In this document: positions 23,699-58,394 of the stretch, piece by piece | Layout: each line of letters opens with the position of its first letter | How positions within the stretch are numbered: position 1 is the first letter of the stretch | Sequence record: MW879344.1 | Strand: one strand, 5' to 3' | DNA length: 64,000 nucleotides | Program-made: the position numbers and the translations under genes | Notes under the pieces: generated by a model | What the model was told of the DNA's origin: nothing | The model's input: only the letters and a program-made list of their open reading frames with translations | Databases searched by the model: none

Positions 23699-24045
23699 AA
23701 AGTAAAATTTATGCTGAACAAGAATTAACCGATGAAGAAAAGAAACAAAAAGAAGAACTGAAGGAAGATGCAAAACAGTTATCAGTACTGAGACAAGGCA
23801 CAGTAACTGAAATCACAATGGGTGGACAAACTTTTCAAGTATCTGACCCTAAAAGGATTGAACAAGCAATATCTTTCTTAGAGAGACATGAAGAATCTTT
23901 ATTCACATTAAGACAACGAATTAAAGAACAGAACAAAGCAATAAATGTATTAATTCAAGAAATTGAAAAATTGAAAGCTGATGTTCAAAGATTGAAAGAG
24001 GAAAGTAATAATGGATTTGGATCACAAGAGTACTCAAACTATTAA
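23695..24045 (+). CDS. coiled-coil hypothetical protein
   Basis: Heptad LRQRIKEQNKAINVLIQEIEKLKADVQRL. Confidence 0.65.
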   Translation: MKSKIYAEQELTDEEKKQKEELKEDAKQLSVLRQGTVTEITMGGQTFQVSDPKRIEQAISFLERHEESLFTLRQRIKEQNKAINVLIQEIEKLKADVQRLKEESNNGFGSQEYSNY

Positions 24046-24661
24046 TTACAGGAAAGCAAGAACTGATGTTGACATTGATTTTAAAGATGGGAAATCAGTT
24101 ATTGAACAACTTCCTTGTACTAGAAGTGTTGAGAAAATTACAGAAGATGGATTGATACCGCATAATAGTGGTGTACATTTTGATAATATCCCTGTAGATC
24201 CAATTACTGGACTCGCATCTATACAATACAAAGAAGCCGAAAGATTAGGATACCAAAAAGTGGATATTTTGTCTCAATCGGCTTATGAACATGTACGTGA
24301 TCGAAATCACTTAAAAGAACTAATGAATAAAGAACCAGATTGGGATTTATTATTAGTACCTGAAATAGTAGAACAGTTGTCTCAAATTAAGAAACATATA
24401 ACTTTATTACATGTGTGGCGACCTAGTAGTATCGATGAATTAGCTATGTTTATTGCTATGATACGTCCAGGAAAACGTCAATGTCAAAGTATGAATAGTT
24501 GGGATGAAGTGCGGGCTGTTATTTGGGATTATGATAGTATTGGACTCGATGCAGAAGGTAGAAAGTTAAGATACTTTAAAAAACCTCATGCATACGCATA
24601 TAGTTTGATGATTGTGGTTCAGTTAAATGCTTTAGTAGAATTTCTTACTTCTTCTTCTTGA
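24011..24661 (+). CDS. dnaE: DNA polymerase III alpha (DnaE)-like catalytic palm/fingers fragment (C-part of a split enzyme)
   Basis: TDVDIDF (=PDFDVDF), HNSGV (=HAAGV), QKVDIL (=KFDFL), DELAMFIAMIRPG, FKKPHAYAY (=FNKSHSAAY). Confidence 0.9.
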   Translation: MDLDHKSTQTINYRKARTDVDIDFKDGKSVIEQLPCTRSVEKITEDGLIPHNSGVHFDNIPVDPITGLASIQYKEAERLGYQKVDILSQSAYEHVRDRNHLKELMNKEPDWDLLLVPEIVEQLSQIKKHITLLHVWRPSSIDELAMFIAMIRPGKRQCQSMNSWDEVRAVIWDYDSIGLDAEGRKLRYFKKPHAYAYSLMIVVQLNALVEFLTSSS

Positions 24662-24998
24662 GAGCAATATTTCTACGTTTAATCCGTTTCGTCGGTAGAT
24701 CACTTAAAGATATTACTGGTCCAGAAATTACTTTCACATGATCAGTATTAAAACGTTTTGTATAGTTTTCGAATTTTTCCATTTCCTCTTGCATAAAAAG
24801 GCAAATCGGAATAGTTCGATTACTTTGCCACCACCAGTTATTGGCTAAAAGTAGCAATTCTTCTTGAAGGGATTCTTCCATCTCATGAAAACAATATAAA
24901 GTCATGTATTGTTTACTTTTGATTTTAATAATCCCATAATAGATTACATCGTCGTGCTCTATGACCGTCACGAACGGATAAGTTTTGTGTTCATTCAT
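24645..24998 (-). CDS. hypothetical protein
   Basis: 117 aa with basic C-terminus; convergent 17-nt overlap with the dnaE fragment; late motif upstream. Confidence 0.7.
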   Translation of the reverse strand: MNEHKTYPFVTVIEHDDVIYYGIIKIKSKQYMTLYCFHEMEESLQEELLLLANNWWWQSNRTIPICLFMQEEMEKFENYTKRFNTDHVKVISGPVISLSDLPTKRIKRRNIALKKKK

Positions 24999-25007
24999 AG
25001 GACTTCC

Positions 25008-25046
25008 ATAAATATTGTATAAAATGATAAATTATATATTATTTAT
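25008..25046. promoter_or_regulatory. overlapping divergent late promoters
   Basis: ATAAATA on + at 25008-25014 and on - at 25046-25040, between divergent genes. Confidence 0.55.
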
Positions 25047-25058
25047 AGAGGTTAAAAC

Positions 25059-26030
25059 ATGGCACATTTCGGCGTATATATGTATCCTTATAATAACGAA
25101 GTTTCTCTTGGCAATTTTAATATGCCTTTTAATAATGAGAAATTGACAATTTATAGAGGTGCAAACAATCCAATCAGTTTTACAGTACATAATGCTGATG
25201 GAAAGTACACACTACTAAGCGACAATCAATATCTTGTATTCAGTATTTTTGATGCTCGAAACGATACAAGAATTTTCGAAGTACTTCTTGAAAAGCTTTT
25301 ACCATCATGGGTATCAGAAGCTGGTCAAGCAAGACCAACAATTAATAACAAACAAAAAGTCTACTATGGCTGTATTGTACCTGCGGGTGTTCTACAAGAT
25401 TTAAGTGTAGGTTCTAAGTACCGTTGGAGTATAACAAAAGTTACCATGAATGGTGATTTAATTGAACCAACCGAGTACTTATACACTGGATTAAATTTTG
25501 AAGCAAGTTCAGAATTAATACTAAGTAATTTAGCAGCACCAACATTTACTCCTAGTCAAGAAATCAGTGCACAACGTAATGCCTCTTGGTTACCTATAAA
25601 GGACAAAGAACAAAAACCTATTAGTAATGGGCTTTTTGGTGATTACGATGTTATGCATTCATCTCCATTGAGGGCTGACGCACAATATGGTTTAGTGGAC
25701 GGTTTAAGTACTGCTGCATTTTATTTCCATAATTTTATTGGTAGAGTACAACTACAAGGTTGCCTTTCTAATGAAACACCAAAGGACGCAGAAGATTACA
25801 AATGGTTCATCATTAAGTTAGATGGGAAAGAATATATAGATAATCCAACTGACCCTAATGGTATTCCTATACCAATGGATGGTATACGTGCATTTAATTT
25901 CCACGGACAACTTATGTGGGTTCGTGTTGTATGTGCAATTCCACCAATTGTTAAGAACTATCCACCTAATGTAATTAAGAAGGATTACAATCCTTTAAAT
26001 ACGATTCCTAAGATTCTAATCCGTAGATAA
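25059..26030 (+). CDS. putative virion structural protein
   Basis: Late motif, beta-rich, GAGG SD. Confidence 0.55.
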   Translation: MAHFGVYMYPYNNEVSLGNFNMPFNNEKLTIYRGANNPISFTVHNADGKYTLLSDNQYLVFSIFDARNDTRIFEVLLEKLLPSWVSEAGQARPTINNKQKVYYGCIVPAGVLQDLSVGSKYRWSITKVTMNGDLIEPTEYLYTGLNFEASSELILSNLAAPTFTPSQEISAQRNASWLPIKDKEQKPISNGLFGDYDVMHSSPLRADAQYGLVDGLSTAAFYFHNFIGRVQLQGCLSNETPKDAEDYKWFIIKLDGKEYIDNPTDPNGIPIPMDGIRAFNFHGQLMWVRVVCAIPPIVKNYPPNVIKKDYNPLNTIPKILIRR

Positions 26031-26031
26031 T

Positions 26032-26060
26032 TGGAATGTCCTATAAAAATGTGGTATAAT
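26032..26060 (+). promoter_or_regulatory. middle-type promoter TGGAAT-N17-TATAAT
   Basis: Directly ahead of the primase-helicase operon. Confidence 0.82.
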
Positions 26061-26089
26061 ATTTGGAGTACAGTCATAAAAGGAATTGA

Positions 26090-27136
26090 ATGATGAATCA
26101 AGTACAAAATATTATCGCAAACATTGTCCACGATCCTGCACCAATTATGGATCGTTGGAATCAACATAATTGCCCTGCTTGTACATCTAGAGGGCAATCA
26201 AGACCTGATACAAAAGGCCGTGGCAACCACATGTTCTTGAACGATGGTTCTGTAGCCTATAATTGTTTCAACTGCCACTTAAAGACTGTATGGACACCTG
26301 GAAAGTACATTAGTAAAGATATGGATGCTTTACTAAGATCTTATGGTGCATCAGAAAAAGAAATGGCACAAATAAAATTCATCGTTAAAGAAATGGTAGA
26401 AAGCGGTGACTATGAAGTACAGGAAAACAGTGCTTCAAAAATCTATCAAAAAATAGTAAGACGTGAACTACCTCAAGGTGCAAGACCATTTTTGGATTGG
26501 GCTAATGATCCTGTCATTCCACCTGACTTTATTAAAGTCATTAATGCAATTAATGAGCGTAATCCGTATATGCTGGACTTAGATTTATATTGGAGTCCAT
26601 CGAAAGAATTTTACATGCATCAACGTTTTATCATTCCATATTATATGAATGGTCAAATTATTGGTTATACTGCTCGGCATATGGACGTAAATAGCGAATA
26701 TCGTTATAGAAATCAAGTAAGCACGAGCATTTTTTATAACTTCGATTTGTTGAATGATGATCGGGTTAAAGTAATATTAGTTGCAGAAGGACCAATTGAT
26801 GCTGCACTAATGGGTGGTTTATCTGCAAATAACTATTTCTTATGTGCATCTCAATTGGAGTTGTTGCATAAAGCACAAGAACGTGGTAAAAAAATAGTTA
26901 TTGTACCAGATAGAGATAAAGATGGTTTAGTAACAATAGAACAAGCAATAGAGCACGGATTCAGTGTAGCAATGCCTGACTTTGGTGCTGTACGTGATGA
27001 AAATGGAATTCGTCACATTAAGGATTTTGATGAAGCATGTGCTAAATTTGGTAGATTATTCTGTTTACAGATGATTCACAATAGCATCTATGATGATAAA
27101 TTCGATATAAGAGTACAAACTGAAAAATGGATTTGA
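26090..27136 (+). CDS. gp61: DNA primase (gp61/DnaG-like)
   Basis: Zn ribbon CPAC..CFNC; TOPRIM EGPID and PDRD. Confidence 0.92.
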   Translation: MMNQVQNIIANIVHDPAPIMDRWNQHNCPACTSRGQSRPDTKGRGNHMFLNDGSVAYNCFNCHLKTVWTPGKYISKDMDALLRSYGASEKEMAQIKFIVKEMVESGDYEVQENSASKIYQKIVRRELPQGARPFLDWANDPVIPPDFIKVINAINERNPYMLDLDLYWSPSKEFYMHQRFIIPYYMNGQIIGYTARHMDVNSEYRYRNQVSTSIFYNFDLLNDDRVKVILVAEGPIDAALMGGLSANNYFLCASQLELLHKAQERGKKIVIVPDRDKDGLVTIEQAIEHGFSVAMPDFGAVRDENGIRHIKDFDEACAKFGRLFCLQMIHNSIYDDKFDIRVQTEKWI

Positions 27137-27143
27137 GGTTTAA

Positions 27144-28625
27144 ATGGCAATTAATACAAACACGGACGTTAAGAAATATGATATACAATACCAACTCTAT
27201 TTGCTATCGCAAATTTTTAGTACACCAGATTTATATGTAAGGTGTAAGAATGTATTAAAACCGGATTATTTTGATAAAGAATATCATTCTAGTATTCAAT
27301 ATGTACATGACTATTCTTCCAAATATAATGTAACTCCAACGTTAAATGACATTAAACACAATTCTGATTTTTCATTTAATGAAACTCCAGTTGGTGATTT
27401 GAATCAGCAAGCAGTACTTGATAGTGTTGGTGAATTTTGTCGTCATAAAGCTTTAGCTTTAGCAATCCAACAAGGAATGGAACTTGTAAACCAAAAACGT
27501 TATGGTGGAATTGAAGAACTCATTCGTGAAGCAATGTTGGTAACTGTACAAAATGATTTAGGTTTAGACATTTATGAAGATCCTGAAGAAGTTATTAGTT
27601 CACTAGCAAATATGCAAGGTACTTTTAAATCAGGATGGGAAACTCTTGATTATAAATTGTTTGGTGGTTTTGGTCGTCAAGAATTAGAAATATTTGCTGC
27701 TGCCTCCGGTGGTGGTAAATCTGTAGTACTTCAAAATTTGGCAGTTAATTTCAGTAAAGCTGGATTAAATGGTGCATATATTACATTAGAACTTGCAAAA
27801 GAATTGGTTGCAGTTCGTATCTATGGTATGTTAGTAAACACTGCTCAAAATCGTGTCAAAATTGATATTGATGAAACAGCGGCTAAAGTTAAGATTGAAG
27901 AAAGAACAAATGGTAAATTACGTATCCACCGTTTACCAGAATCCGTAACCACCGTTAATGATATTGAAAGTTATATTCGTGAACTACAAATTAAGACTGG
28001 TATTAAACTAGACTACGTTTGTGTTGACTACTTAGATCTATTAACATCAGATCGTTGTGGTCCAAATGATAAATCGAATGCTTTCGTAAAAGATAAGTTT
28101 GTATCGGAAGAATTACGTGCACTTGCAATGAAAATGGATTTAACTGTATTCACAGCTTGTCAGTTCAACCGTAGTGGTGTTAGTGGTGAAGATGTTAAAA
28201 GTCAAGCACAGATTGCTGGTGGTATTTCTAAAATCTATACTGCGGATAACGTAATTTATATTGATGCACGTAAAGAACGTGGTGAGATGGTATTTGACTT
28301 CCAAAAAACACGTAACAGTTCAGCAGTAGGTTCACGTCTAGTTATGTCATATGATGTAGATTCATTACGTGTACTAGATCATCAGCAAACTATTCAAGAA
28401 ATGCAGATTAATACTTCATTTAAACATAGTGGAAAAGTACTTATAGGTAATGGTAATTTGGCGGCACATCCAACAATATCTGCCCCAAGTGCGTTGAATA
28501 AGTTACAAAATACTTTAACAACAGTAAGTCAAAAAACGAACACTACTTTGCCAGATGATATAAATACAAAAAAGGCTGATGAGAAAGTTTCTAGTATGAG
28601 AAACTTTTTGAATGGTAGGACGTAA
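27144..28625 (+). CDS. gp41: replicative helicase (gp41/DnaB-like)
   Basis: ASGGGKS, YITLEL, VDYLDL, QFNRSG, QKTRNS. Confidence 0.95.
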   Translation: MAINTNTDVKKYDIQYQLYLLSQIFSTPDLYVRCKNVLKPDYFDKEYHSSIQYVHDYSSKYNVTPTLNDIKHNSDFSFNETPVGDLNQQAVLDSVGEFCRHKALALAIQQGMELVNQKRYGGIEELIREAMLVTVQNDLGLDIYEDPEEVISSLANMQGTFKSGWETLDYKLFGGFGRQELEIFAAASGGGKSVVLQNLAVNFSKAGLNGAYITLELAKELVAVRIYGMLVNTAQNRVKIDIDETAAKVKIEERTNGKLRIHRLPESVTTVNDIESYIRELQIKTGIKLDYVCVDYLDLLTSDRCGPNDKSNAFVKDKFVSEELRALAMKMDLTVFTACQFNRSGVSGEDVKSQAQIAGGISKIYTADNVIYIDARKERGEMVFDFQKTRNSSAVGSRLVMSYDVDSLRVLDHQQTIQEMQINTSFKHSGKVLIGNGNLAAHPTISAPSALNKLQNTLTTVSQKTNTTLPDDINTKKADEKVSSMRNFLNGRT

Positions 28626-28629
28626 AACT

Positions 28630-28899
28630 ATGGCAAATAAAAAGCACAATCTTCTGGATAGTATCGTTAACTATACTTCTGATAAAGAAAAATTACAAAG
28701 TTTGGGAAATCGTGCAGACCACGCAATCAATGCAGTTATAAACCTACTTGATAGTATAGAAGAAGATTTTGATCAAGAAGAAGCTGATGATTTAAGGCGT
28801 CGATTGTTTCTTAGTATTAAAAATCGTGACTATCGCAAATTCGAAAAAGGGCTAGAAAATTTAGCCCTATCAGACAAGCGTAAGAATAAAGGTGATTAA
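28630..28899 (+). CDS. hypothetical protein (start of a late head-protein cluster)
   Basis: TATAAATA at 28559-28566 inside the helicase 3' end; ATG 28630. Confidence 0.65.
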   Translation: MANKKHNLLDSIVNYTSDKEKLQSLGNRADHAINAVINLLDSIEEDFDQEEADDLRRRLFLSIKNRDYRKFEKGLENLALSDKRKNKGD

Positions 28900-28900
28900 T

Positions 28901-29065
28901 ATGAAAAATAAAAAGATTAATGAAAATGCTTCTTCTGGTGCTACAAGTGCTGGTAGTATTGCATCAGTAAGTGGTGGATTAAATTATCCTCTTATAAGCC
29001 GTTTACCTCCTACTAATTTCTTTGGCTATAAAGAATATAAACCTAAGAAAAAGAAAAAGGATTAA
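28901..29065 (+). CDS. small basic putative internal head protein (54 aa, absent from the ORF track)
   Basis: MKNKKINE|NASSGATSAGSIASVSGG...YKPKKKKKD; GGTGA SD; fills the gap between flanking genes exactly. Confidence 0.75.
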   Translation: MKNKKINENASSGATSAGSIASVSGGLNYPLISRLPPTNFFGYKEYKPKKKKKD

Positions 29066-29066
29066 T

Positions 29067-29465
29067 ATGAATTCCTATACATTTTATACAATTAATACTG
29101 TTATAGATATTGGGGATGGTAACACACCACCAATTAATGATGGTATTTTTACAGGGGCTATGAACCTTTGTAGATTAGTTGAAAGTGTAATGATATTTGA
29201 CAGACCTATGATGGTTAGTGTAGTAAGGACTGAAGTTGATTTGAGTAAAAACAATAATGCTGCATTCTATAATTTACCGTCAGCATGGGGTGAATGTATT
29301 GTTAGTACTTTTAAATTTGCACTACCTATGGATGTGAACGTAAACTGTAACGGTATTCCATTAGTACTTCCTACTGAAGTTAACGGCACTAGATTAACAA
29401 AGTTTAATAGTGTAACTTCAGAACGTAACATTAGTATTTCAAAGCAAACCTTTTCCCGTACATGA
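29067..29465 (+). CDS. hypothetical (putative virion) protein
   Basis: Start at ATG 29067 behind AAGGA; in the late cluster. Confidence 0.6.
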   Translation: MNSYTFYTINTVIDIGDGNTPPINDGIFTGAMNLCRLVESVMIFDRPMMVSVVRTEVDLSKNNNAAFYNLPSAWGECIVSTFKFALPMDVNVNCNGIPLVLPTEVNGTRLTKFNSVTSERNISISKQTFSRT

Positions 29466-29511
29466 TAAATATCTTCATGTACAGAAAAGGTTTTTCTTTT
29501 TGGAGATAATA

Positions 29512-30426
29512 ATGGATATACAACAAACAGCACAAGAGTTACAAAAGTTTGCAGATGCTAATGGATTGCAGATGGATGTTAACCAAGCATTGAGTGCAAT
29601 GGACGCTGGTGATTTCGTAGAAATTAACCAAGCAATGGATAATTCTGACAACAGAACTATCATGCAAGTATTACAAAAGTACAAAGCACGTACTAATGAA
29701 AATTATCAGTACTTTGATGGAACAACACTATCAGAATCTGACGAAATTAATAACATCAATTCAATGGGTGTAGATGCACTAATTGAAGCATATCGTGATA
29801 ATGTTCATGGAGCATTTTATGATTGTTCTCACTTAACACTAAGTGAAATGAGAACATTAGTGTATGAAGATCTTGCAAGTACTTTAAGTGCAAATCAAAC
29901 CGCTAATAGAAATACTACAACACAGCAAACACAAGTAAACCCACAAACTCAAGCTAAATTAAAACAGGCTGAATTGCAGCAAAATGCAAATAACAGTTCC
30001 TTTAAGGTTTCTGTTCCTGGTGATAGTTCTGGTACAACTCAAGTTGCACCTATTGTTGGCGTAGATGTTGGTCCAACACCACAGCAAACATTAGTTGTTA
30101 CTAAGAATAATGAAAAACCAAATCAAGTTAATGTATTTGGTTTAGATGATGTTCAGGCAGTACAAGAAGATGACGAACATGATGATGTGGGTTCACAAGA
30201 AGTTATGGCACCACAAGCACCTGCTGATAATATTGAACAGGTTGATTCACCATTTACTCAAGAAAATCCAGGATTAGGTGAATTATCACGTGAAATTGGA
30301 AGAATCGAAGGTGATCAATATGATACTTCAGGTGAAGAAAGTCCTGAAGGTAATGAAGCAATGAACAATGAAGATGAGATGATTTCTCAAATATTGGATT
30401 TTTGTTCACGGATGAGAGGTAGATAA
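29512..30426 (+). CDS. putative head protein, Q/N/D/E-rich
   Basis: ATAAATA at 29465-29471; GGAG SD; TNE/LSE/VQE motifs. Confidence 0.6.
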   Translation: MDIQQTAQELQKFADANGLQMDVNQALSAMDAGDFVEINQAMDNSDNRTIMQVLQKYKARTNENYQYFDGTTLSESDEINNINSMGVDALIEAYRDNVHGAFYDCSHLTLSEMRTLVYEDLASTLSANQTANRNTTTQQTQVNPQTQAKLKQAELQQNANNSSFKVSVPGDSSGTTQVAPIVGVDVGPTPQQTLVVTKNNEKPNQVNVFGLDDVQAVQEDDEHDDVGSQEVMAPQAPADNIEQVDSPFTQENPGLGELSREIGRIEGDQYDTSGEESPEGNEAMNNEDEMISQILDFCSRMRGR

Positions 30427-30644
30427 TGAGAGCAGTCGATACAAAAAATGGTTATTCTGTTATCGTATCGAATGAAGAATATCGCCTTATAAAAAAGATT
30501 GATGCAAACATTAAAGTTCCAGTTGAATCATTATCAGAGTACTATCAAGAATTGGGTGAAAAACTTTATTCTCGTGGTGTATTAAATAAAGAAGAAAATG
30601 ATGAAACTGAGTATTTTGTATCAATTAAAAGGAGTAAGCAATGA
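30426..30644 (+). CDS. hypothetical protein
   Basis: Translationally coupled 72-aa ORF. Confidence 0.65.
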   Translation: MRAVDTKNGYSVIVSNEEYRLIKKIDANIKVPVESLSEYYQELGEKLYSRGVLNKEENDETEYFVSIKRSKQ

Positions 30645-31444
30645 GTGATGATTTCGGAGAATGGGAACAACGTAAACAAGGTGTAGACCTTATGAGCGAT
30701 ATTATGTCTGCATTTGATGATATTGAAGAAGGTCGTCCTGTACCAAAAAAATTACCAGATGGAAGTACGTTTGTTAATGATTTCGACCAAATCAATCGTG
30801 CTGAAACTAAAAATCTTTTATATGCTCTCCAAGAAGTAACTGGAGAGTATGGTAATATTCATCAGGAAGATGCACAATATTATGATCAAGGTGGTTACCT
30901 TGGGGAATCTAATGACTATGATAGTGTATATGGTTATTATGAACCACAAGAAGGGGAAACGTTTATTCAAGACCCTTCCTATGTAAAAATGAAACAAGTT
31001 CAACCACAACAAAATGCATACAGTGCACCAGTACAGCAATCTAGGCCATATGTTCCAGGACAAAACTGGAGTATTATAGAAGAATCTGTACTTGGGATGA
31101 AAAGTGCAAAAGTATACAGTATTAAATGTAATGCAACAAATCAGGTTGTTATGGATAACATCATGATGTATGAATCTGCTTTAGCATTGAAAACTATACT
31201 TAATGACGGTAAAACATTGACAGATCCTAAAGTACTTGGTATTATCAGTTCTGGTATTCAATATACTAGAGTTATTACTGAAGCTATCAATGCAGCTAAG
31301 AAACGTCAACAAGTTCTAAAAGAATCACGGTACGATAAGGCTCAAGAACTTGATAAAGAAATTGCTGAACATAAAAGTAAAGCAACTGAACTTAAAGAGC
31401 GAGTACTAAACTTCTTACGAGAAGAAGGATTCATAACTAAATAA
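30641..31444 (+). CDS. hypothetical (putative head) protein
   Basis: Coupled ORF with AGGAG SD and C-terminal coiled coil. Confidence 0.6.
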   Translation: MSDDFGEWEQRKQGVDLMSDIMSAFDDIEEGRPVPKKLPDGSTFVNDFDQINRAETKNLLYALQEVTGEYGNIHQEDAQYYDQGGYLGESNDYDSVYGYYEPQEGETFIQDPSYVKMKQVQPQQNAYSAPVQQSRPYVPGQNWSIIEESVLGMKSAKVYSIKCNATNQVVMDNIMMYESALALKTILNDGKTLTDPKVLGIISSGIQYTRVITEAINAAKKRQQVLKESRYDKAQELDKEIAEHKSKATELKERVLNFLREEGFITK

Positions 31445-31476
31445 GGATAGAAATTTCATTTATAAGGAAATAACAA

Positions 31477-32133
31477 ATGACTAAACAATTTTCAAAGATG
31501 ATGGAATCTGCTAACCGCGTGGAAGCAATGAGTTTTATTCAACTTAATGAATCAAACATTGAAAAAGCTGAAATCGTTCTGGCGGTAAAAGGTGAAATCG
31601 TTGATAAGCTACAACGTCAAGCAGAAGTTATTAATAACATGGGCGTTGACGTACTTGGTCCATTGCTAGACCGTATTAAAGCTGAACATGGTGTTCCAGC
31701 AGCAGATTCATTCCGTAATAACATTAGTGGTCTATTGGATCATGCAGTAAAAACTATTATGGATGTTAAAGATAAAATCAGTACTGAAACTCTTAAACTT
31801 ACTGGTGATATTACTAGTTCTCCAGATGTTGCCGATTTAGGTTCAGACGAGGTGATTGATGACGTTTCACTTGATGTTGATGGTGATAACTTCGATTTTG
31901 AAGCTGACGCCGAACTAGGTGCAGAAGATGATCTAGATGCAGATATTATGAGTGAACCAACACCAATGGATCGTGAGATGAAAGAATCTGCTCAACCAAA
32001 ACGCTTCGGCATTCAACTAGAAAGTGTTAAAGGTACTGTTGGTAATAAGTATTTTAATTCCAAAAAAGAAATGAATACTTGGCTACAAGAGAACGAAAGT
32101 AAGATTGCTAAGGTAATCAAGATTCTAAAATAA
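31477..32133 (+). CDS. putative prohead core/scaffold-like protein
   Basis: Repeated MME/LNE/MKE/QLE motifs and an acidic linker. Confidence 0.5.
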   Translation: MTKQFSKMMESANRVEAMSFIQLNESNIEKAEIVLAVKGEIVDKLQRQAEVINNMGVDVLGPLLDRIKAEHGVPAADSFRNNISGLLDHAVKTIMDVKDKISTETLKLTGDITSSPDVADLGSDEVIDDVSLDVDGDNFDFEADAELGAEDDLDADIMSEPTPMDREMKESAQPKRFGIQLESVKGTVGNKYFNSKKEMNTWLQENESKIAKVIKILK

Positions 32134-32145
32134 TTGGAGGGTGAT

Positions 32146-32481
32146 ATGAGGTTCAGTCAGATAACCGAAGATGCACCAGGTAAAGATATACGTAATATGA
32201 TTAGTACTATAGCTTTATCATTAATCGCTACTGGTAGAGAACAAATAAGTATTCAATCATTGATTAATGAAATAAAAAAGCGTACTAATATCGATGTTCC
32301 ATATAATGTAATGATGGATATTCTTAATGAACTTCCATTTGTTCAGGATGCAAATTCTGATATGGTAACACTTCAAGGCTCTGATACATCACCTGATGGT
32401 GATAATGCAGAATCATCAGAAGAACAAGTTACTGATATGGCAACTAAAGCAGCATCATCAAATTTAAAACAAGATATTTGA
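32146..32481 (+). CDS. putative head protein
   Basis: Starts MRFSQITE|D, a T4-like cleavable leader; GGAGG SD. Confidence 0.55.
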   Translation: MRFSQITEDAPGKDIRNMISTIALSLIATGREQISIQSLINEIKKRTNIDVPYNVMMDILNELPFVQDANSDMVTLQGSDTSPDGDNAESSEEQVTDMATKAASSNLKQDI

Positions 32482-32507
32482 AACAAACGAAAAACATGTG
32501 CTATAAT
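32479..32507 (+). promoter_or_regulatory. middle-type promoter TGAAAC-N17-TATAAT
   Basis: Exact spacing, TGTGC before the -10. Confidence 0.82.
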
Positions 32508-32520
32508 ATAGGAGTACAGG

Positions 32521-33222: not shown

Positions 33223-33226
33223 AAAA

Positions 33227-33781: not shown

Positions 33782-33809
33782 TTCTATACTTTAATAGGAG
33801 ATTTTAGTT

Positions 33810-34388: not shown

Positions 34389-34408
34389 AAAAGGCACCCG
34401 CCTTTTTT
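34387..34408. terminator. intrinsic (possibly bidirectional) terminator
   Basis: AAAAAAGGC-accc-GCCTTTTTT. Confidence 0.75.
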
Positions 34409-34468
34409 ACCCCCAATAAATAGTAAACTACAATTTTTAAGAAAAATAAACAACAACAAGGATGTACG

Positions 34469-36796: not shown

Positions 36797-36805
36797 TATA
36801 AAATT

Positions 36806-45387: not shown

Positions 45388-45393
45388 CTTTAT

Positions 45394-45421
45394 AAGGGGG
45401 TAAATAATTTTTTACCCTCTT
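45394..45421. other. hairpin with TAAATA at the apex
   Basis: AAGGGGGTAAA-taattt-TTTACCCTCTT; no U tract. Confidence 0.5.
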
Positions 45422-45439
45422 AACAACTGGAGTATTATT

Positions 45440-45961: not shown

Positions 45962-45967
45962 TACAAC

Positions 45968-48132
<2,165 letters not shown>

Positions 48133-48133
<1 letters not shown>

Positions 48134-50565: not shown

Positions 50566-50574
50566 GGTACAAAT

Positions 50575-50940
50575 ATGATAAGCACGATTTTTATTCTACT
50601 AATAGCATTTCAAATAAAGCATTTTCTTTGTGATTACCCATTACAAGGAAGATTTATGTTAGGTAAGTTCAATAAAGAAGGTTGGGAGTTACCATTAGCT
50701 GCACATGCTGGTGTTCACTTCATAGGAACATTCTTGATTGCATTGTTCTTCGGATTCTGGATTGCATTAACAGTTGCAGTACTAGATTTTGTTATTCACT
50801 TCGTAGTTGATAAAATAAAAGTTGAAGCTTCACGCAAAACTGATCATAGTAAACCTGAGTTCTGGTGGTATCTAGGTTTAGACCAAATGGCACACCACTT
50901 AACACATTACATGATAATTGCTATATTAGTTTTACTATAA
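50575..50940 (+). CDS. DUF3307-like membrane protein
   Basis: HFLCDYPLQ, HAGVH, HFVVD, LGLDQMAH. Confidence 0.8.
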   Translation: MISTIFILLIAFQIKHFLCDYPLQGRFMLGKFNKEGWELPLAAHAGVHFIGTFLIALFFGFWIALTVAVLDFVIHFVVDKIKVEASRKTDHSKPEFWWYLGLDQMAHHLTHYMIIAILVLL

Positions 50941-50945
50941 ATATT

Positions 50946-50976
50946 AACGATGCAGAGATGCATCGTTATTTTTTTT
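50946..50976 (+). terminator. intrinsic terminator
   Basis: AACGATGCA-gaga-TGCATCGTT plus T tract. Confidence 0.82.
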
Positions 50977-51004
50977 GAAACAAAGAAACAAATTATGCTA
51001 TAAT
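50976..51004 (+). promoter_or_regulatory. middle-type promoter TGAAAC-N17-TATAAT
   Basis: Heads the topoisomerase operon. Confidence 0.82.
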
Positions 51005-51037
51005 ATACTGGCTAAGAAACAATAAAAGGAATTAGAA

Positions 51038-53026
51038 ATGGCAAAGGAAAAGAAAAGTTCTGTTCTAGCTGAACACGGTGTTCAACAATTAACTGAATAT
51101 CAACATGCTCGAATCCGTACTGAAATGTACTTAGGTTCGAAGTCTGAACATGAGCAACCAGTTCTTCTATTCAACGAAGATGGTTATACTGTGCAAAATT
51201 TAGGTTGGGTTCCTGCCCTATTAACATCATTCCGAGAAATCGTTGATAACTCGTTAGATGAATTCGTTAAAGCTGGTACTAAAGATCCAGTACTACGTGT
51301 TACATATAATGAAGATGAACTTGATTTTGAAATTAGCGATAACGGTCGTGGTATTCCAATTGATTATGTTCCAGAAACACAAAAACATGTGTGTACTATG
51401 GTACTAACCGAGATGAAAACTGGTCGTAACTTTAATGATGATGAACGTAACAATGTCGTTGGTATGAACGGTCTTGGTGGTTCAGTTGTTATGATTGTAA
51501 GTGAGAAAGCTGAAATCGAAATTCACCGTGCAGGTAAACCTTACAAAACTGACAAAGCAAATGCCGAATATGATGGTATGTATAAATTCACACAAAAGTT
51601 CACTGAAGGTACAGCAATGTTCCCTGAACTTGGAATTGAAGAACCAAGTATTCGTAAAGTAAAAGCTGATAAGACTGGAACTACGGTTCGATTCAAAATC
51701 AGTAAAGAAGTATTCAAAGTACACACACTACCTATTCAACTAGTATATAGTATTCTTAAAGAAGTTGCAGCGGCGAATCCATCGTACAAAATCTTTTTGA
51801 ATGATCAACGAATTACTGTGAATAAAAAAGGTTTATTTAGTTCTGCTAAGAATACAATGACTCTTAAAGTTGATGACAGTGAAACTGGACTTGACAGTAC
51901 TTTCTACATTGTACCCAATGTAGTACAGGGTCTTAACAAGAACCTACATATGCAAGGTCTTGTTAACAACGCACCATCACTAGAAGGTGGTACACACTTA
52001 GATACGTTCCAACAGAAATTTGCACTTGGTGTTATCAATGCATTGGATCGTATTCCAAAAAATAGAAAACGCAATCTAAAACCAAACCGTTCTGATATTG
52101 AAGAAGGTCTGTTGATTTACAACATCACTAAGATGAATACACCAACATTCAACTCTCAAATCAAAACAAAACTAACTAATGAAAACGTCATAAAGCCAGT
52201 ACAAAACGCAATGAGCGATGAATTCTTTAATGAACTTGTTAAGAAAAATACCGAGTGGGTTGAAGAAATTTATACTCGTTGTGCTGAACGTACCAATAAA
52301 AAGGATGCAGACGAAGATCGTAAAATGGCAAAACGTCTTCTAAAAGGCAAAGTAGCTAAACTACGTGATGCAAATGGTCAAAACCGAAGTGAATGTATTC
52401 TTCTAATTGCAGAAGGTGATTCAGCAGTAAGTTCTATGACAGCGGCACGTAACTCTACTATTCATGGCATTCTTCCATTACGTGGTAAGATTCAAAACGT
52501 AAATGGAAAAGAGAAGACAAAAGATCTAATGGGTACTGCGGATAAGCCATCTGCAATTCATGATATTATGGCTTCTCTAAACATTGTTCCTGGCGAAAAA
52601 GCAGTTCGTTCAAATATGAACTTCGGTAAACTTTATATCTGTGCAGATGAAGATGAAGATGGTAAGAACATCGGTGCTCTAGTAGTAAACTTCTTCTATA
52701 AATTCTGGCCTGAATTGTTTGCTGATCCAGAAGATCCATTCATTTATATTTTCAAAACCCCATTCATTATTTTAGAAAAGGGTAAAGAATCTAAGTACTA
52801 CTATGGTCATAATGTCCATGAGTATAATCCTGATGATTGGAAAGGTTGGAAAGCAACTCGTGCTAAAGGGTTAGGTACTCTTGAAGTATCAAACTTCAGA
52901 GATGCACTAGCAAATGGTGTAGCAATCGCAATTACTGATGATGGTTCATTAGGGGAAACTCTAGATCTTATCTTCAATAAAGAACGTGCTGATGACCGTA
53001 AAGAATGGACTAAAGAAGACATGTAA
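51038..53026 (+). CDS. type IIA topoisomerase ATPase/TOPRIM subunit (T4 gp39+gp60 fused, GyrB-like)
   Basis: EIVDNSLDE, DNGRGIP, GMNGLGG, AEGDSA, PLRGK, DEDEDG, KGLGT. Confidence 0.96.
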   Translation: MAKEKKSSVLAEHGVQQLTEYQHARIRTEMYLGSKSEHEQPVLLFNEDGYTVQNLGWVPALLTSFREIVDNSLDEFVKAGTKDPVLRVTYNEDELDFEISDNGRGIPIDYVPETQKHVCTMVLTEMKTGRNFNDDERNNVVGMNGLGGSVVMIVSEKAEIEIHRAGKPYKTDKANAEYDGMYKFTQKFTEGTAMFPELGIEEPSIRKVKADKTGTTVRFKISKEVFKVHTLPIQLVYSILKEVAAANPSYKIFLNDQRITVNKKGLFSSAKNTMTLKVDDSETGLDSTFYIVPNVVQGLNKNLHMQGLVNNAPSLEGGTHLDTFQQKFALGVINALDRIPKNRKRNLKPNRSDIEEGLLIYNITKMNTPTFNSQIKTKLTNENVIKPVQNAMSDEFFNELVKKNTEWVEEIYTRCAERTNKKDADEDRKMAKRLLKGKVAKLRDANGQNRSECILLIAEGDSAVSSMTAARNSTIHGILPLRGKIQNVNGKEKTKDLMGTADKPSAIHDIMASLNIVPGEKAVRSNMNFGKLYICADEDEDGKNIGALVVNFFYKFWPELFADPEDPFIYIFKTPFIILEKGKESKYYYGHNVHEYNPDDWKGWKATRAKGLGTLEVSNFRDALANGVAIAITDDGSLGETLDLIFNKERADDRKEWTKEDM

Positions 53027-53034
53027 AAATTAGT

Positions 53035-53053
53035 GGGGTACATGAAGTACCCT
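53035..53053 (+). other. intercistronic hairpin between topoisomerase genes
   Basis: GGGGTAC-atgaa-GTACCCT; weak U tract. Confidence 0.45.
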
Positions 53054-53076
53054 CAAATATCAAAGAGGCAAATGGA

Positions 53077-54486
53077 ATGCGTAAACCTAAAAAAATTGCA
53101 GAAGTAGTTCCTAATGAACTAACTCTATTGAACTTTCAAAGTTCAGACTATATTAACCAATCATCCCTAGAATATGCGTTAAGTACTTTTGACCGTTCTC
53201 TACCAGGGATTGATGGTTTTAAAAACTCACAACGAAAAGCAATCTTTACTCTAAGTAAAATTAGTGGTGAGATCAAAACAGTATCTTGTGCAGGTCGTAT
53301 GATTAGTGATGGTATCTATCTACACGGCGATGCTTCAGCTAGTGGTACATTACAAAATCTAGCTAGTCCAGTAGTTAACAACTATCCACTAATTGGAAAG
53401 CGTGGTGGATTTGGTACACAGGTAAATCCTGAACCAGCTAGTCCACGTTATACTTATGTGAAGAAAACTAAAATTACTGAAGCTTTAGTACTTCGTGATT
53501 TAGATGTTGTTCCGATGCAAGAGAACTATGATGGTACAACATATGAACCAAAATTCTTCTTACCATTAATTCCACTAGCGTTACTAGGAGTAGATGGAAC
53601 AGCGACAGCATATAAAAGTTTTATTTTTCCTTATCGTATGAATGATATTATTGATAATACTATTCGTGCTATTGATGGTAAAGAATTACTACCAATGACT
53701 CCATACTATGCAAGTTATGGTGCTAACGATTATGTTGAAGATCGTGGAGAAGGTAAGTATACATTCTTTGGTAAAGCTGAAGTTATTGATGCAAGTACTG
53801 TGAGAATTACTGGTTTATCACCACGTATGAAACTAGAAAAATTTGTTGAAGATTTGATTGCAATGGAAGATTCTGGTAAAATTCGTAGTTATGATGATAA
53901 CAGTTCAGGTAAAGTAGATATTACCATTAAACTACCACGTGGTCTTAGTACTACATGGAACGAAATGGATGTGCTTCAATATTTTGACATTTCAACAAAA
54001 TTAGCACATACCCTTAATGTTTTAGGTGAAAATGGAAAAGTAAAAAGTTACACCGATGTTCAGAGTATAATCTCGGACTTCGTTCAGTTCAGATTCAAGT
54101 ACTACATTAAACGTTATGAAAAGTTACTTGCTGACGCAGATGCAGAGGTTCGTTATAAAATTCTTGTAAAAGAATGTTTTGATAACGACATGACTGGTAA
54201 GATTAAATCTTTCCAAAACCGTGCAGAACTAGTAGAATTTGTTACTTCATTGAATAATGAAATTGAAGCATCAGATGAAAATATTCAAGGCATTGTTAAT
54301 TTCCCAAGTTATCGGTGGACTCAAGAAAACTATGATAAAGTACTTCAAGATATTGAAGATGCATTAGCTAAGATGGATGAGTATAATGATTTGCTTGCTA
54401 ATCATGATAAAATCTGGAATATCTACAAAGATGAACTTATTGAACTACGTAATATGAACATCGAATACAAAGAAGATACTGAATAA
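53077..54486 (+). CDS. gp52: type IIA topoisomerase DNA-cleavage subunit (T4 gp52, GyrA-like)
   Basis: DGFKNSQRK, YLHGDAS, catalytic ASPRYT. Confidence 0.95.
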   Translation: MRKPKKIAEVVPNELTLLNFQSSDYINQSSLEYALSTFDRSLPGIDGFKNSQRKAIFTLSKISGEIKTVSCAGRMISDGIYLHGDASASGTLQNLASPVVNNYPLIGKRGGFGTQVNPEPASPRYTYVKKTKITEALVLRDLDVVPMQENYDGTTYEPKFFLPLIPLALLGVDGTATAYKSFIFPYRMNDIIDNTIRAIDGKELLPMTPYYASYGANDYVEDRGEGKYTFFGKAEVIDASTVRITGLSPRMKLEKFVEDLIAMEDSGKIRSYDDNSSGKVDITIKLPRGLSTTWNEMDVLQYFDISTKLAHTLNVLGENGKVKSYTDVQSIISDFVQFRFKYYIKRYEKLLADADAEVRYKILVKECFDNDMTGKIKSFQNRAELVEFVTSLNNEIEASDENIQGIVNFPSYRWTQENYDKVLQDIEDALAKMDEYNDLLANHDKIWNIYKDELIELRNMNIEYKEDTE

Positions 54487-54490
54487 ACCA

Positions 54491-54519
54491 AAAGGACGCA
54501 TTAGCGTCCTTTATTTTTT
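54491..54519 (+). terminator. intrinsic terminator (AAGGACGC family)
   Basis: AAGGACGC-atta-GCGTCCTT-tattttt. Confidence 0.8.
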
Positions 54520-54534
54520 AATTGCGAACATATA

Positions 54535-54541
54535 ATAAATA
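54535..54541 (+). promoter_or_regulatory. putative late promoter
   Basis: ATAAATA after a terminator and 33 nt before the 1009-aa gene. Confidence 0.6.
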
Positions 54542-54574
54542 CCACAAAGCTTTTTATGTTTTTGGAGATAATAT

Positions 54575-57500
54575 ATGGCAAACTTCGAACCCAAATGGGA
54601 TTTGAGAGCTGATACCAATTCAATTAAAGAAGGACAGACCACATACTTTAGACTGCGAATTTCTAAAAGTCAAACAACTTCACCAAATAATGAATATGTA
54701 CTTCAAGATGATCAATATCTTGAATTTACATTTAACATTGTTGGGGCAGGGGAAACTTTAGAAGAACGTGATTTTAATGTATCTATAGGTGAAAGTACTT
54801 CTTCTTTAGTTCCAATCGGTGAAGCTGGAACTGGAACCCCTCATATTCAGGGTAAACATGTAGTAAAACTTAGTAGAAAAGATTTCCAATTAAGTTCAAG
54901 CGTAACATTCATTGATGCATTCTTTTTTAAAATAGAATGTCCTGAAGATGGTATATGGGATGGTCCAGAATCATTAACATTTAACATTGACAGCATAAAT
55001 GAAATTACTCTTTTAGATGGTCAAATTGCAAATACAATGCCAAGTGGGGTATTGGGAACTAGTACACAAGTACTGAATTATAATACTGCTGGAGAAATTT
55101 GGCTAACACCTAATTTAACGACCCACGGTGATAATCTTTATACAATTGGTGGTATTGGATATGGTGCCGAAAGTAGATTGTTCATTCAAGCATTTGGACA
55201 AAGTAGAACAATAAATGGTGTAACTAATGTTTTTATGCCATCGTATGAAGTGCAAGATATAACAATGTCAGATATTCCATCTGAACATATTACTGGTTCA
55301 GGAACAATTTTAGTACCGGATGAATCGGCACTACCTTCTATTCCAGAATATCCTATAACTTTAGGTACTACTAGGAATCAAATAAATTCATTTTATATGA
55401 AGAATGTTGCTAATTTAATGTCTGGTGCTGGTTGTATTATTCAAGGAACTACACTAACAGATCATAATAATGAACTCTATTATAGTTATGGAATAAGAGT
55501 ATATGCAAATACTGGTTTCAAATTAATGTGTCCAGCAGAAGCAGAAAGTATATATGTAAGTAATGTAAATGCTGTAAATGCAGGTGGTATAAATTCTTCA
55601 TTGTCTGAATTAACAGAATATGGTATATTAGATACGAACAAAATTGGTAGATGTGATATATATGGTAATGTAAAACATGAACCACAAACAATAGTCTTAC
55701 CACCATCCACTACCGGTGGTCAAATGGTAATTTATATTCGAGTTAAGGTTAGTAATACAATTTGCCCACCTTGGATTTCATTTAATGTAATATCATTTAA
55801 TAGTCCAATTCTAAAATCTTCTAATACATTGGATAATAGAATTTATATTAACACAAACAGTACTGCATTAAATTCAGTTGAACTAGATAACATTTTACAT
55901 GCAGCAGTTGCTGGTTCTGGATGGACAACATCATATAATGCCAATAATACAAAAAATCAAGTACCAAATACTATAGAACCAGTTGAGATTCGAAAATTAG
56001 AGGAAAACTCTATTATGATCAGAGATGAAATTGGAAATATGGTACAATCAGGATTGAAATTTAATGCTAATGGACAATTTGTTCAAACATTCATTTATGA
56101 TTCAGAACCAGTAGATGCATATTTTCGTGCAACTATTCTTTCTATAAAGGATTTTTATAATACTGATACTGATGCATACTATGTTGGTAAAAGATTCCGT
56201 GCATATAATGTATGGGTTTGTCCAGCAGATGTTACTAACTTCTCAACAAAACCAAAACCTGGACATTTATATCAATTAAAAGATACTAAAGTATATCCTT
56301 ATGTTGTTAAAGATACTGTTGTTGAAGGTATAACTAAAATTTTATTTGAAGAAGATAAATGGTACGATTTAGGATTGTATAATGAATCATTAGGTGCTAA
56401 TATCATAGGTTCCGAAAGGATGTTTAGAATTGTAGTTAATGATGATACTGGTACTGATATTTCTTTTGAAACTGATTCCAACTTAGGTGAAATTCATGTT
56501 GGTGAATATTTTGGTCATACGGTTTATCCAAAAATCGTTGCAACTGGTTCAGAATTAATAACCTACACAATAAATGCAAGTACTTCACCAAATGATATTA
56601 CAAAGTACGGAATAGATTTAACTGCTGATGGATTTATTGTAGGGGAAGCATATGCATTAAGTACTGATTTTTCTGCCAATGATGACATACCTTTGCAGTT
56701 CGATGTAGTTGCAACTGGTAAAAACGGTAAATCATTGACACAACGTTTTAAAATTCGTATAGTTCGTGGTTTAGGTCAAAACTTCTTACATGCTGATATT
56801 TGTCCATCACTTTCATTAGAACGTGCATGGTTCAGAATGATTAGTACTACAGCATTTAGTAGAGCAAATTACTATCGTGCATCAGATCCAAGATATGGTG
56901 TTAAGAAAGTCCCACGCATTCTTATGAAAGAAAACTTCGTTGATCCTAATAAGAATTGGGAAGGGATAAAACAAACCGTATTAAATATTCGAAATGGTAT
57001 TGTTGATACAGCACATGGTGCACCTACACCAGATGGTTCATTCCGACTAGTACTAGGGAATTATAAATTACGTTCAGCACTTGACAATCAAGGAAATGTA
57101 CTGTATGATGTTCTATACAGAGAGTTACATTCAGAAGGAACACAAGTAAGTTTAAGTTTAAATCCATTGAAATATACTGATTATTCAACATCACTTATTT
57201 CAGAAATTTATGGTCTACGTCAAAATGTGTACAACATTGTTGGTGAAGATACTGTGAACTTATTAACTGATCCTACAGATTTGAACAATCGTGGTATAGT
57301 AGTTGATCCTATTAACGGATTATCAGTTGAAATGCTAGATACAGTTCCTCGTTATATGAACCATCCATATGTTGAAGATAACATTAAGCCAATGTACTTC
57401 CCATGTATACCAGTTGCTTACTTACAACCAGGACAAGGGGAAGTATTCTTTAATACATTGATTCAAAATAACGAACATGGTACATTACTCAATACTGAGT

Positions 57501-57604
57501 TTGAAGTTTCTGGAGTTGAATTCAGTTACTTCGTACAAGACAATGAGAGATACGTACCAGAAACCTTTATGGCCTCATTAAGAGTGCCGAACCTATTTCA
57601 ATAA
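54575..57604 (+). CDS. large virion structural protein (baseplate wedge-like)
   Basis: 1009 aa, beta-rich Ig-like character, late motif upstream. Confidence 0.6.
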   Translation: MANFEPKWDLRADTNSIKEGQTTYFRLRISKSQTTSPNNEYVLQDDQYLEFTFNIVGAGETLEERDFNVSIGESTSSLVPIGEAGTGTPHIQGKHVVKLSRKDFQLSSSVTFIDAFFFKIECPEDGIWDGPESLTFNIDSINEITLLDGQIANTMPSGVLGTSTQVLNYNTAGEIWLTPNLTTHGDNLYTIGGIGYGAESRLFIQAFGQSRTINGVTNVFMPSYEVQDITMSDIPSEHITGSGTILVPDESALPSIPEYPITLGTTRNQINSFYMKNVANLMSGAGCIIQGTTLTDHNNELYYSYGIRVYANTGFKLMCPAEAESIYVSNVNAVNAGGINSSLSELTEYGILDTNKIGRCDIYGNVKHEPQTIVLPPSTTGGQMVIYIRVKVSNTICPPWISFNVISFNSPILKSSNTLDNRIYINTNSTALNSVELDNILHAAVAGSGWTTSYNANNTKNQVPNTIEPVEIRKLEENSIMIRDEIGNMVQSGLKFNANGQFVQTFIYDSEPVDAYFRATILSIKDFYNTDTDAYYVGKRFRAYNVWVCPADVTNFSTKPKPGHLYQLKDTKVYPYVVKDTVVEGITKILFEEDKWYDLGLYNESLGANIIGSERMFRIVVNDDTGTDISFETDSNLGEIHVGEYFGHTVYPKIVATGSELITYTINASTSPNDITKYGIDLTADGFIVGEAYALSTDFSANDDIPLQFDVVATGKNGKSLTQRFKIRIVRGLGQNFLHADICPSLSLERAWFRMISTTAFSRANYYRASDPRYGVKKVPRILMKENFVDPNKNWEGIKQTVLNIRNGIVDTAHGAPTPDGSFRLVLGNYKLRSALDNQGNVLYDVLYRELHSEGTQVSLSLNPLKYTDYSTSLISEIYGLRQNVYNIVGEDTVNLLTDPTDLNNRGIVVDPINGLSVEMLDTVPRYMNHPYVEDNIKPMYFPCIPVAYLQPGQGEVFFNTLIQNNEHGTLLNTEFEVSGVEFSYFVQDNERYVPETFMASLRVPNLFQ

Positions 57605-57613
57605 GGAGGATTT

Positions 57614-57916
57614 ATGTTTCATCCGTTTTTCGATCCTTCATCTTTAAGTGATAAAGAACTTTATGATAAAATCACTGAAGTTTCGCTTCGTATAAGTGCT
57701 GCTCGTTCAGCAGGTATACAATACGAAATGATACAATCTATGTTCACCGTAATTCAAGCTTGTGAGTTTGAGATTCAGAATCGCCAAGCTCACAAAGACT
57801 TGGAGCAAGCGGCAAAAGAAGATAATTGTATTTTTGATTCAGACAGCTATTTAAATGACAAAGATGATAAGAAACATGAAAGTACAAGAAAACAGAACTA
57901 TAAGCGAGGATGGTGA
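57614..57916 (+). CDS. hypothetical protein
   Basis: AGGAGG SD; overlaps the dnaE N-fragment. Confidence 0.65.
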   Translation: MFHPFFDPSSLSDKELYDKITEVSLRISAARSAGIQYEMIQSMFTVIQACEFEIQNRQAHKDLEQAAKEDNCIFDSDSYLNDKDDKKHESTRKQNYKRGW

Positions 57917-58394
57917 TGTACGTTTAAATCTGAACGCCGTGGTTTATGCAATAAATTGCGGCACAGATATTACATATATCCAGCTTAATGAGCAAGATGA
58001 ATTTGAACGTTTAAAGTTCAATGACAACTGCAAGAAATTTGGACTATCGGAACGTATGTTAGATTACACCATAGAACATGATAAAAATCATGAATTATGG
58101 CGGTATGATCCAGCTTATGATAAAATCAACTTAGAAGATTATTTTCTTTCTTTATGTAGTACTGATATAGAACGTGATAGAGTACTATATGAATTAAGTT
58201 TATATGAAAACTATAACATGACTAAACTATTACGCTGTATGATATGGTTGGTAGATTACCTAGAAGAACATAATATTTTTTGGGGATTAGGTCGTGGAAG
58301 TTCCGTAAGTAGCTTCTGTTTATACTTGATTGGATTACACTTAGTTGATTCAGTTAAATATGAATTAGATGTGAATGAATTTTTGAAATGGTAA
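57876..58394 (+). CDS. dnaE: DnaE-like N-terminal palm/thumb fragment (N-part of a split C-family polymerase)
   Basis: DRVLYEL, WGLGRGSSVSSFCLYLIGLHLVDSVKYELDVNEFL aligns with DnaE [34 protein letters not shown]; start 57855 or 57876. Confidence 0.88.
   Translation: MKVQENRTISEDGDVRLNLNAVVYAINCGTDITYIQLNEQDEFERLKFNDNCKKFGLSERMLDYTIEHDKNHELWRYDPAYDKINLEDYFLSLCSTDIERDRVLYELSLYENYNMTKLLRCMIWLVDYLEEHNIFWGLGRGSSVSSFCLYLIGLHLVDSVKYELDVNEFLKW

Follow-up and report, generated by a model that had tools for sequence, protein, structure and literature searches.

Iyer, Anantharaman, Krishnan, Burroughs and Aravind (2021, Viruses 13:63; PMC7824862) described a minimal split DNA polymerase III (Pol III) alpha in the group 2.2 jumbo phages, and suggested that it cooperates with the family B polymerase (PolB) in the synthesis of one strand or in repair. 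In the portion of their report available to us, on which every comparison with it made here is based, two distant genes encode two stand-alone proteins, an N-terminal half that binds the nucleoside triphosphate and a C-terminal half that binds Mg2+ and template, with a family B polymerase alongside and no other Pol III domains. Here we analyze such a pair of genes in a stretch of 64,000 nucleotides from sequence record MW879344.1 (the window, at its full length), which is 100% identical to Erwinia phage pEa_SNUABM_49 and covers ~186–250 kb of its 358 kb genome.

The window is 99.8% identical to Serratia phage BF and belongs to a RaK2-like jumbo phage of the genus Eneladusvirus; RaK2-like phages are included in group 2.2. 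It has the features of the system of Iyer et al., namely two distant stand-alone halves, a family B polymerase and a T4-like jumbo phage background, and the available portion of their report reveals no essential difference. The original prediction, made from the letters of the window alone, had implied that the pair was novel, but the split mini Pol III has been known since 2021. What apparently goes beyond that description are fused forms of the two halves, a conserved convergent small gene, a primase-helicase block, the coupling of one fused form to a primase of the AEP type, and different promoter motifs in front of the two halves. A literature search found no experimental work on the split Pol III later than that of Iyer et al.

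We conclude that the products of the two open reading frames (ORFs) are very probably the two subunits of a single minimal polymerase core of the C family (Pol III alpha type). The pair would be an active polymerase that assists PolB. The value of the analysis lies in the confirmation on this genome, in fused forms that point to the halves being one enzyme, and in the leads given by the small neighboring gene, the primase linkage and the promoter motifs. At 390 residues in two chains, this Pol III core would be smaller than any other known form of the bacterial replicase fold, and would show which parts of the fold are indispensable. Its presence in phages that otherwise replicate with a PolB of archaeal/eukaryotic type bears on the origin of the two replicase lineages and on the use of a second polymerase at the phage replication fork.

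The two genes and their products

The presence of both ORFs of the split Pol III, as earlier described, is confirmed and is far beyond chance. They are as follows:

24011–24661, + strand: C-half of mini Pol III alpha, 216 amino acids (phrog_11778; assigned by profile and structure model)
57876–58394, + strand: N-half of mini Pol III alpha, 172 amino acids (PF07733, phrog_11127)

The two genes are 33–33.9 kb apart on the same strand, with the gene for the C-half upstream of that for the N-half, and their products add up to 388 amino acids (172 + 216), close to the total of about 390 given in the original prediction. The ORF at 24011–24661 starts with the Asp motif and the ORF at 57855/57876–58394 finishes with the GS-motif stretch that had drawn attention to them. 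An alternative in-frame ATG at 57855 would give an N-half of 179 amino acids; the start at 57876 is favored because most homologues have 172. The sequence GAGG lies about 8 nt 5′ of the ATG of the C-half. The 5′ end of each gene lies inside the preceding gene, by 41 nt for the N-half (57614–57916 and 57876–58394) and by 35 nt for the C-half (23695–24045 and 24011–24661), which suggests translational coupling of each half to an unrelated upstream gene. Both families already carry the label “DNA polymerase” in PHROGs. In several GenBank genomes (JN882285, KU574722, MT939486–8) the C-half is labeled “putative membrane protein” or “hypothetical protein”, while the RefSeq versions read “DNA polymerase”.

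The N-half is recognizable from its single sequence. It matches PF07733 (DNA_pol3_alpha, the nucleotidyltransferase domain of Pol III alpha) with 33.3 bits, where the Pfam cut-off is 23.9, and an E value of 5e-8 over positions 22–95 of the 260 in the profile. It aligns to residues 385–454 of Taq Pol III alpha, and its profile matches residues 318–392 of the Escherichia coli alpha subunit. The protein carries a G-x-GRGSS motif and has its C terminus 3 residues past a conserved F-L, and GRGSS is retained in all 93 of 93 relatives. The N-half has the Pol-beta-like palm with the G-S nucleotide-binding loop that characterizes the C family.

The C-half, taken as a single sequence, has no match in Pfam, NCBIfam or the PDB, and its family is revealed solely by profile and structure model. 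A profile of 24 relatives aligns to Mycobacterium tuberculosis DnaE1 in four colinear stretches, which are the DIDID strand, a palm segment, the K-x-D strand leading into RPG, and the K-S-H-A finger motif. The Asp motifs D19-x-D21-x-D23 and K83-x-D85 align to the DIDID of DnaE1 (413–424 region) and to K579-x-D581. A helical finger remnant with R152-P153 and K190..H193 corresponds to DnaE1 568–669 and 773–787, where the matches are colinear and each is individually weak. The AlphaFold model of the C-half has a mean predicted local distance difference test score (pLDDT) of 89.3, and its 11 best PDB matches are all C-family polymerases, the best seven with probabilities of 0.82–0.99. The C-half has the three catalytic acidic residues, the finger motifs and the overall fold of the C family.

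Conservation of these positions is close to complete. Among 239 relatives of the C-half, D19 is kept in 235, D21 in 234, D23 in 232, and K83 and D85 each in 238, while for the finger residues the counts are 234 for R152, 236 for P153, 221 for K190 and 233 for H193. The RPG and K..H finger motifs are retained at 92–99% and the active-site residues overall in 97–100% of relatives, in agreement with the earlier statement that all catalytic residues are present (232–238 of 239, and GRGSS as above). The further proposal that the ORFs are halves of a mini C-family core divided between the GS motif and the metal-binding Asp residues is borne out by the PF07733 match, by the profile and model of the C-half and, by way of the fused relative P0292 described below, by TIGR00594.

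Most of the remainder of DnaE is missing. A short beta-hairpin stands at the position of the DnaE thumb, so that the thumb of DnaE1 (about 424–568) is reduced to about 40 residues, and about 100 finger residues of DnaE are absent from the C-half. There are no PHP, thumb, clamp-binding, HhH or OB parts in the mini Pol III, and Pfam gives no PHP match in either half of the window pair. The absence of inteins and of clamp-binding and OB parts that had been read from the sequence is confirmed, the ends of the alignments being too short for inteins. Scores against the NCBIfam equivalog models for full-length DnaE are 16–54 bits, compared with cut-offs of 434–1806, and the window pair is encoded by two genes instead of forming a single polypeptide. 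With phage DnaE as query, no other DnaE pieces that could reconstitute an ordinary replicase were detected within the window, to which our own search was confined; for the rest of the 358-kb genome the absence of further Pol III pieces follows Iyer et al., within the available portion of their report.

Split point and co-occurrence

The split point is constant. N-halves stop 0–9 residues past F-L-K and C-halves start 0–18 residues ahead of DxDxD, and the same point is used in phages of different classes of bacteria. Neither half on its own holds a complete active site. When a natural fused relative was used as query, 188 matching places were found in 96 phage records, none of them covering ≥80% of the query, and the halves are fused in none of the 96. 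Both halves are present in all but about four of these records, at least one of the four being a partial genome, and the genus counts of the two halves match. Of the conditions that would have refuted the original prediction, neither a lack of co-occurrence nor a loss of the catalytic residues in relatives is observed, nor were further DnaE pieces detected in the window. The distance between them varies widely, from 4.8 kb in RsoM2USA through 31–44 kb in 121Q, RaK2, pEa_SNUABM_49 and PA5oct to 182 kb in Atu_ph07.

An exhaustive profile search returned 537 clusters at 50% identity, nearly all of 180–215 amino acids and two longer. A homologue of the C-half occurs in the Alishewanella phages OQ508956.1 and OQ508957.1, whose genomes of 141 kb are well under the 200-kb threshold for jumbo phages, and the mini Pol III is therefore not confined to jumbo genomes.

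Natural single-chain relatives

A few metagenomic proteins carry the two halves in one chain, joined exactly at the split point. They are rare and occur in two forms:

L003 1066–2193 and L010 519–1649: fused N + C proteins on metagenome contigs (P0292, P0373 and P0374; 375–376 amino acids)
L014 1516–4181 (JGI metagenome contig, 7992 bp): P0350 (336 amino acids) paired with an AEP primase (552 amino acids)

P0292, of 375 amino acids, consists of an N-half followed directly by a C-half (hhalign probability 99.9), and its two relatives from other samples are 78–81% identical to it. Residues 92–206 of P0292 align to positions 302–417 of the Pol III alpha model TIGR00594 as one stretch spanning the junction (E 7.6e-15), which shows that the ORFs of the window correspond to adjoining portions of what is a single uninterrupted stretch in DnaE. 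The structure model of P0292 has a pLDDT of 90.9 and a predicted template modeling score (pTM) of 0.88, with low confidence limited to the linker. The 17 PDB chains that it matches at E ≤ 1e-3 all belong to DnaE or PolC, with a template modeling (TM) score of about 0.5 over the query, and the next match has an E value of 3.5. The fused genes in L003 and L010 keep the downstream neighbors that the C-half has in the window, phrog_11637 and phrog_14467. The fusion is probably secondary, because the nearest relatives of these fused proteins are split C-halves (51–59% identity).

P0350 is a second and more distant fused form. The gene for the 552-amino-acid protein, which has a ColE2-type AEP initiator primase domain (PF03090) and a helix-turn-helix, shares its last 4 nt with the P0350 gene, and from its sequence the locus resembles a small element that carries a primase and a polymerase as a pair of genes. 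No close relatives of the fused proteins were found in collections of viral or genome contigs, and the coupling to an AEP primase is a hint only, since it comes from a single contig. In another metagenome locus, L007, a 200-amino-acid gene upstream of a split C-half was considered as an adjacent N-half and rejected, as it belongs to phrog_11058, like the window gene at 22979–23698.

Gene neighborhood

The C-half is the last gene of an overlapped run of six (21197–24661) and stands at the head of a block of genes that is shared with other phages. The other members of the block in the window are:

24645–24998, − strand: small convergent gene, 117 amino acids, phrog_11637, with a basic KRIKR-type tail
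25059–26030, + strand: 323-amino-acid protein, phrog_14467, “virion structural protein”, next block member after the small gene
26090–27136, + strand: DNA primase, phrog_47, 1.4 kb downstream of the C-half, with no Pfam match
27144–28625, + strand: DnaB-like replicative helicase (PF03796)

PA5oct, Atu_ph07, Salicola SCTP-2 and Vibrio phage 2.275.O have kept this block, from the C-half through the small gene and phrog_14467 to the primase and the helicase. The 3′ end of the small gene overlaps the gene for the C-half by 17 nt, and this tail-to-tail pair was present in all the genome rows that were inspected, as far out as Atu_ph07 and Salicola SCTP-2; 89 phage records match. The small gene also adjoins the fused gene in L010 and L003, with 27–48% identity. 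Its product has no match in Pfam or the PDB, and could possibly be a third subunit or partner of the polymerase or else, through its antisense orientation, a regulator.

Two further genes of the window bear on the role of the pair:

2859–5891, + strand: full family B DNA polymerase that includes an exonuclease domain (PF00136, PF03104)
18756–19628, + strand: stand-alone DEDD 3′–5′ exonuclease, best match to Pol III epsilon models (E 2.4e-27), under the curated cut-offs

The complete PolB and the primase that the original prediction had noted are both confirmed. PolB is presumed to be the replicase. In line with the original prediction, its completeness makes a main replicative role for the mini Pol III unlikely. 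The epsilon-like exonuclease lies 5.2 kb upstream of the C-half in the window, RaK2 and 121Q and is also found in PA5oct. Since PolB has an exonuclease domain of its own, this protein could, speculatively, proofread for the mini Pol III.

The N-half is the last of a three-gene unit (54575–58394) that encodes a 1009-amino-acid virion protein, a 100-amino-acid protein and the N-half. The unit had been described as a late baseplate operon, a reading that we do not uphold, as the 1009-amino-acid protein is only a generic “virion structural protein” and the upstream neighbors of the N-half are not conserved in PA5oct. The PA5oct record does not list either half as virion-associated. Downstream of the N-half are a small protein, a GroES-like gene and a clamp loader, the same as in PA5oct:

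59481–60440, + strand: clamp-loader AAA+ subunit, 1.1 kb downstream of the N-half

Promoter motifs

Promoter-like motifs were found in front of the units of both halves:

21155–21163, + strand: promoter-like site of the extended −10 type (TGTGATAAT class, TGnTATAAT), at the head of the six-gene run that ends in the C-half
54491–54512, + strand: terminator-like hairpin, preceding the unit 54575–58394
54534–54541, + strand: AATAAATA motif, NATAAATA class, 41 nt before the 1009-amino-acid gene and after the terminator
58404–58412, + strand: promoter-like site of the extended −10 type, TGGTATAAT, preceded at 18 nt by TTGAAA, directly after the N-half at the start of the next unit

The promoter of the C-half unit reads TGTGATATAAT (extended −10) and belongs to a very regular class A motif, TGAAAC-N17/18-TGnTATAAT (TGGTATAAT(AT)), with 15 intergenic sites in the window. 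These sites lie 22–177 nt (mostly 22–52) upstream of genes, chiefly replication genes, and include those at 2433, 6407, 15811, 15898, 21155, 26052, 41098, 50996 and 58404. A class B motif, NATAAATA, stands 36–64 nt before the start codons of about a dozen genes of the window, including sites at 121, 2795, 14435, 25007, 25040(−), 28559, 29464, 34415, 44013, 45987 and 54534, and resembles the T4 late promoter. The exact form TATAAATA is not enriched in the window, with 5 sites compared with 11.9 expected; all five are upstream of a gene in the right orientation, which together with the low count suggests that the sequence is avoided elsewhere. What is conspicuous is the relaxed class, NATAAATA, in front of genes.

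The two halves are therefore preceded by different promoter motifs, an arrangement of sequence elements that fits different expression classes. The earlier proposal of separate expression waves is thereby supported in part; calling class B “late”, however, is not secure, because the motif also precedes PolB and the ribonucleotide reductase gene. In the available part of the published account, RNA sequencing of PA5oct separates middle from late genes poorly.

Interpretation and alternative explanations

Four observations argue that the two ORFs form one enzyme: the active site is nearly invariant, the split point is constant, the halves occur together, and natural single-chain forms exist. The N-half would bring the nucleotide-binding GS loop to a composite active site and the C-half the metal-binding Asp residues and the remaining finger motifs, with the two predicted to assemble without a covalent link. 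The pair would then act as a DNA-templated polymerase of low processivity that assists the PolB replisome. Its likeliest task may be to take over primers from the primase or to fill short gaps, as suggested by the place of the C-half in the conserved primase-helicase block and by the translational coupling of one fused relative to an AEP initiator primase.

Several points weigh against this interpretation. Templated synthesis is not assured, because the thumb, clamp-binding, HhH and OB parts with which DnaE holds DNA are missing. P0292, the fused relative from which the assembly of the window pair is deduced, is about 33–36% identical to the window proteins. A few members of the family deviate from DxDxD. 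The link to the primase is one of guilt by association, in a block that also holds a virion protein, and the AEP coupling rests on one 8-kb contig for which no close relatives were found.

A more elaborate form of the proposal, which we regard as doubtful, places the mini Pol III at the center of a primase-coupled polymerase of several parts. This would comprise the N-half, the C-half, the small basic protein and perhaps the epsilon-like exonuclease, would pass primers from the primase to PolB, and would have its assembly gated by the promoter classes of the two halves. If true, a T4-like replisome would contain, in bacterial-type form, an equivalent of the Pol alpha step of eukaryotes.

An alternative to a PolB-assisting polymerase is that the pair is a nucleotidyltransferase with a Pol-beta fold that no longer copies DNA and is used instead for template-free tailing, for the synthesis of a signaling nucleotide or for base modification, the last two of which had been among the roles originally suggested. 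The loss of the thumb and the other DNA-holding parts of DnaE would agree with such a change of function, and the Pol III palm is itself a member of the Pol-beta-like nucleotidyltransferase superfamily (PMC7824862). On the other hand fold searches return C-family polymerases only, with no significant match to cGAS/CD-NTase enzymes, CCA-adding enzymes or poly(A) polymerases; the last two and the CD-NTases gave no match of useful score in Pfam, in NCBIfam or in the fold searches of the PDB or BFVD. The finger motifs are kept, at the frequencies given above, and both halves lie among replication genes. A template-independent or signaling role is much less likely for the first two of these reasons, and overall we consider the nucleotidyltransferase improbable.

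It is still less likely that the two proteins are not partners and act separately. The distances of 4.8–182 kb between the genes and the different promoter motifs could be taken in this sense, but the halves occur together in nearly all of the 96 records, the active site is incomplete in either of them, and natural fusions exist, one of which is predicted to fold as a single compact unit.

We give very little credence to the view that the ORFs derive from a host dnaE that was captured and is now decaying. Only about one third of DnaE is left, as decay might produce, but the family comprises hundreds of clusters that have diverged while keeping a constant length, near-invariant catalytic residues and, in phages whose hosts belong to different bacterial classes, the same split point. 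Joining of the halves by a split intein, for which the two-gene dnaE of cyanobacteria would be the model, or by RNA trans-splicing can be dismissed, as intein halves, of about 100 and 35 residues, would not fit into the 0–9 and 0–18 residues beyond the motifs, both genes possess start codons, and the gene for the C-half is upstream of that for the N-half on the same strand.

Comparison with known systems

The closest relatives in structure to the composite core are the bacterial DnaE and PolC polymerases (PDB 2hnh, 2hpi, 3e0d, 5lew and 3f2b), with which it shares the GS motif of the palm, the acidic residues of DxD and KxD, the RPG and K-S-H-A motifs and the fold. It differs from them in having about 390 amino acids in two chains instead of about 1160, and in the absence of PHP, thumb, clamp-binding motif, HhH, OB and tau-binding end as well as of most of the fingers.

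In cyanobacteria, too, a C-family polymerase comes from two genes that are far apart, and there a split intein ligates the two halves of DnaE into the full-length protein. The cyanobacterial gene is split at a different position, and the mini Pol III lacks an intein and its two chains have to remain apart. A full-size DnaE annotated as three coding sequences (451, 306 and 264 amino acids) with gaps of about 400–700 nt occurs in Bacillus phage vB_BceM_WH1 (LC597490.1; L015 1354–5552); this is probably a gene interrupted by introns or endonucleases, and a different kind of split from that of the mini Pol III.

Second polymerases that work next to a primase offer a parallel for the proposed task. 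In Bacillus subtilis DnaE extends primers for PolC, and host Pol I extends the primer made by the Rep protein of ColE2. The ColE2 Rep protein is an AEP primase (bioRxiv 10.1101/2024.09.03.610885). In both cases a second polymerase stands beside a primase, as in the model proposed here, and the likeness rests on gene neighborhood only.

The assembly of a polymerase from two phage genes has a precedent in phage PhiKZ, whose family B polymerase is split within the palm and assembles from the products of two genes, as seen by cryo-electron microscopy (bioRxiv 10.64898/2026.09.30.755723; PMC13648687). The PhiKZ enzyme belongs to an unrelated family (B, not C), serves as the main replicase and includes a third subunit derived from a clamp. 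It is nevertheless, like the pair described here, a polymerase of a jumbo phage with its palm divided over two genes, and one whose products form a single enzyme.

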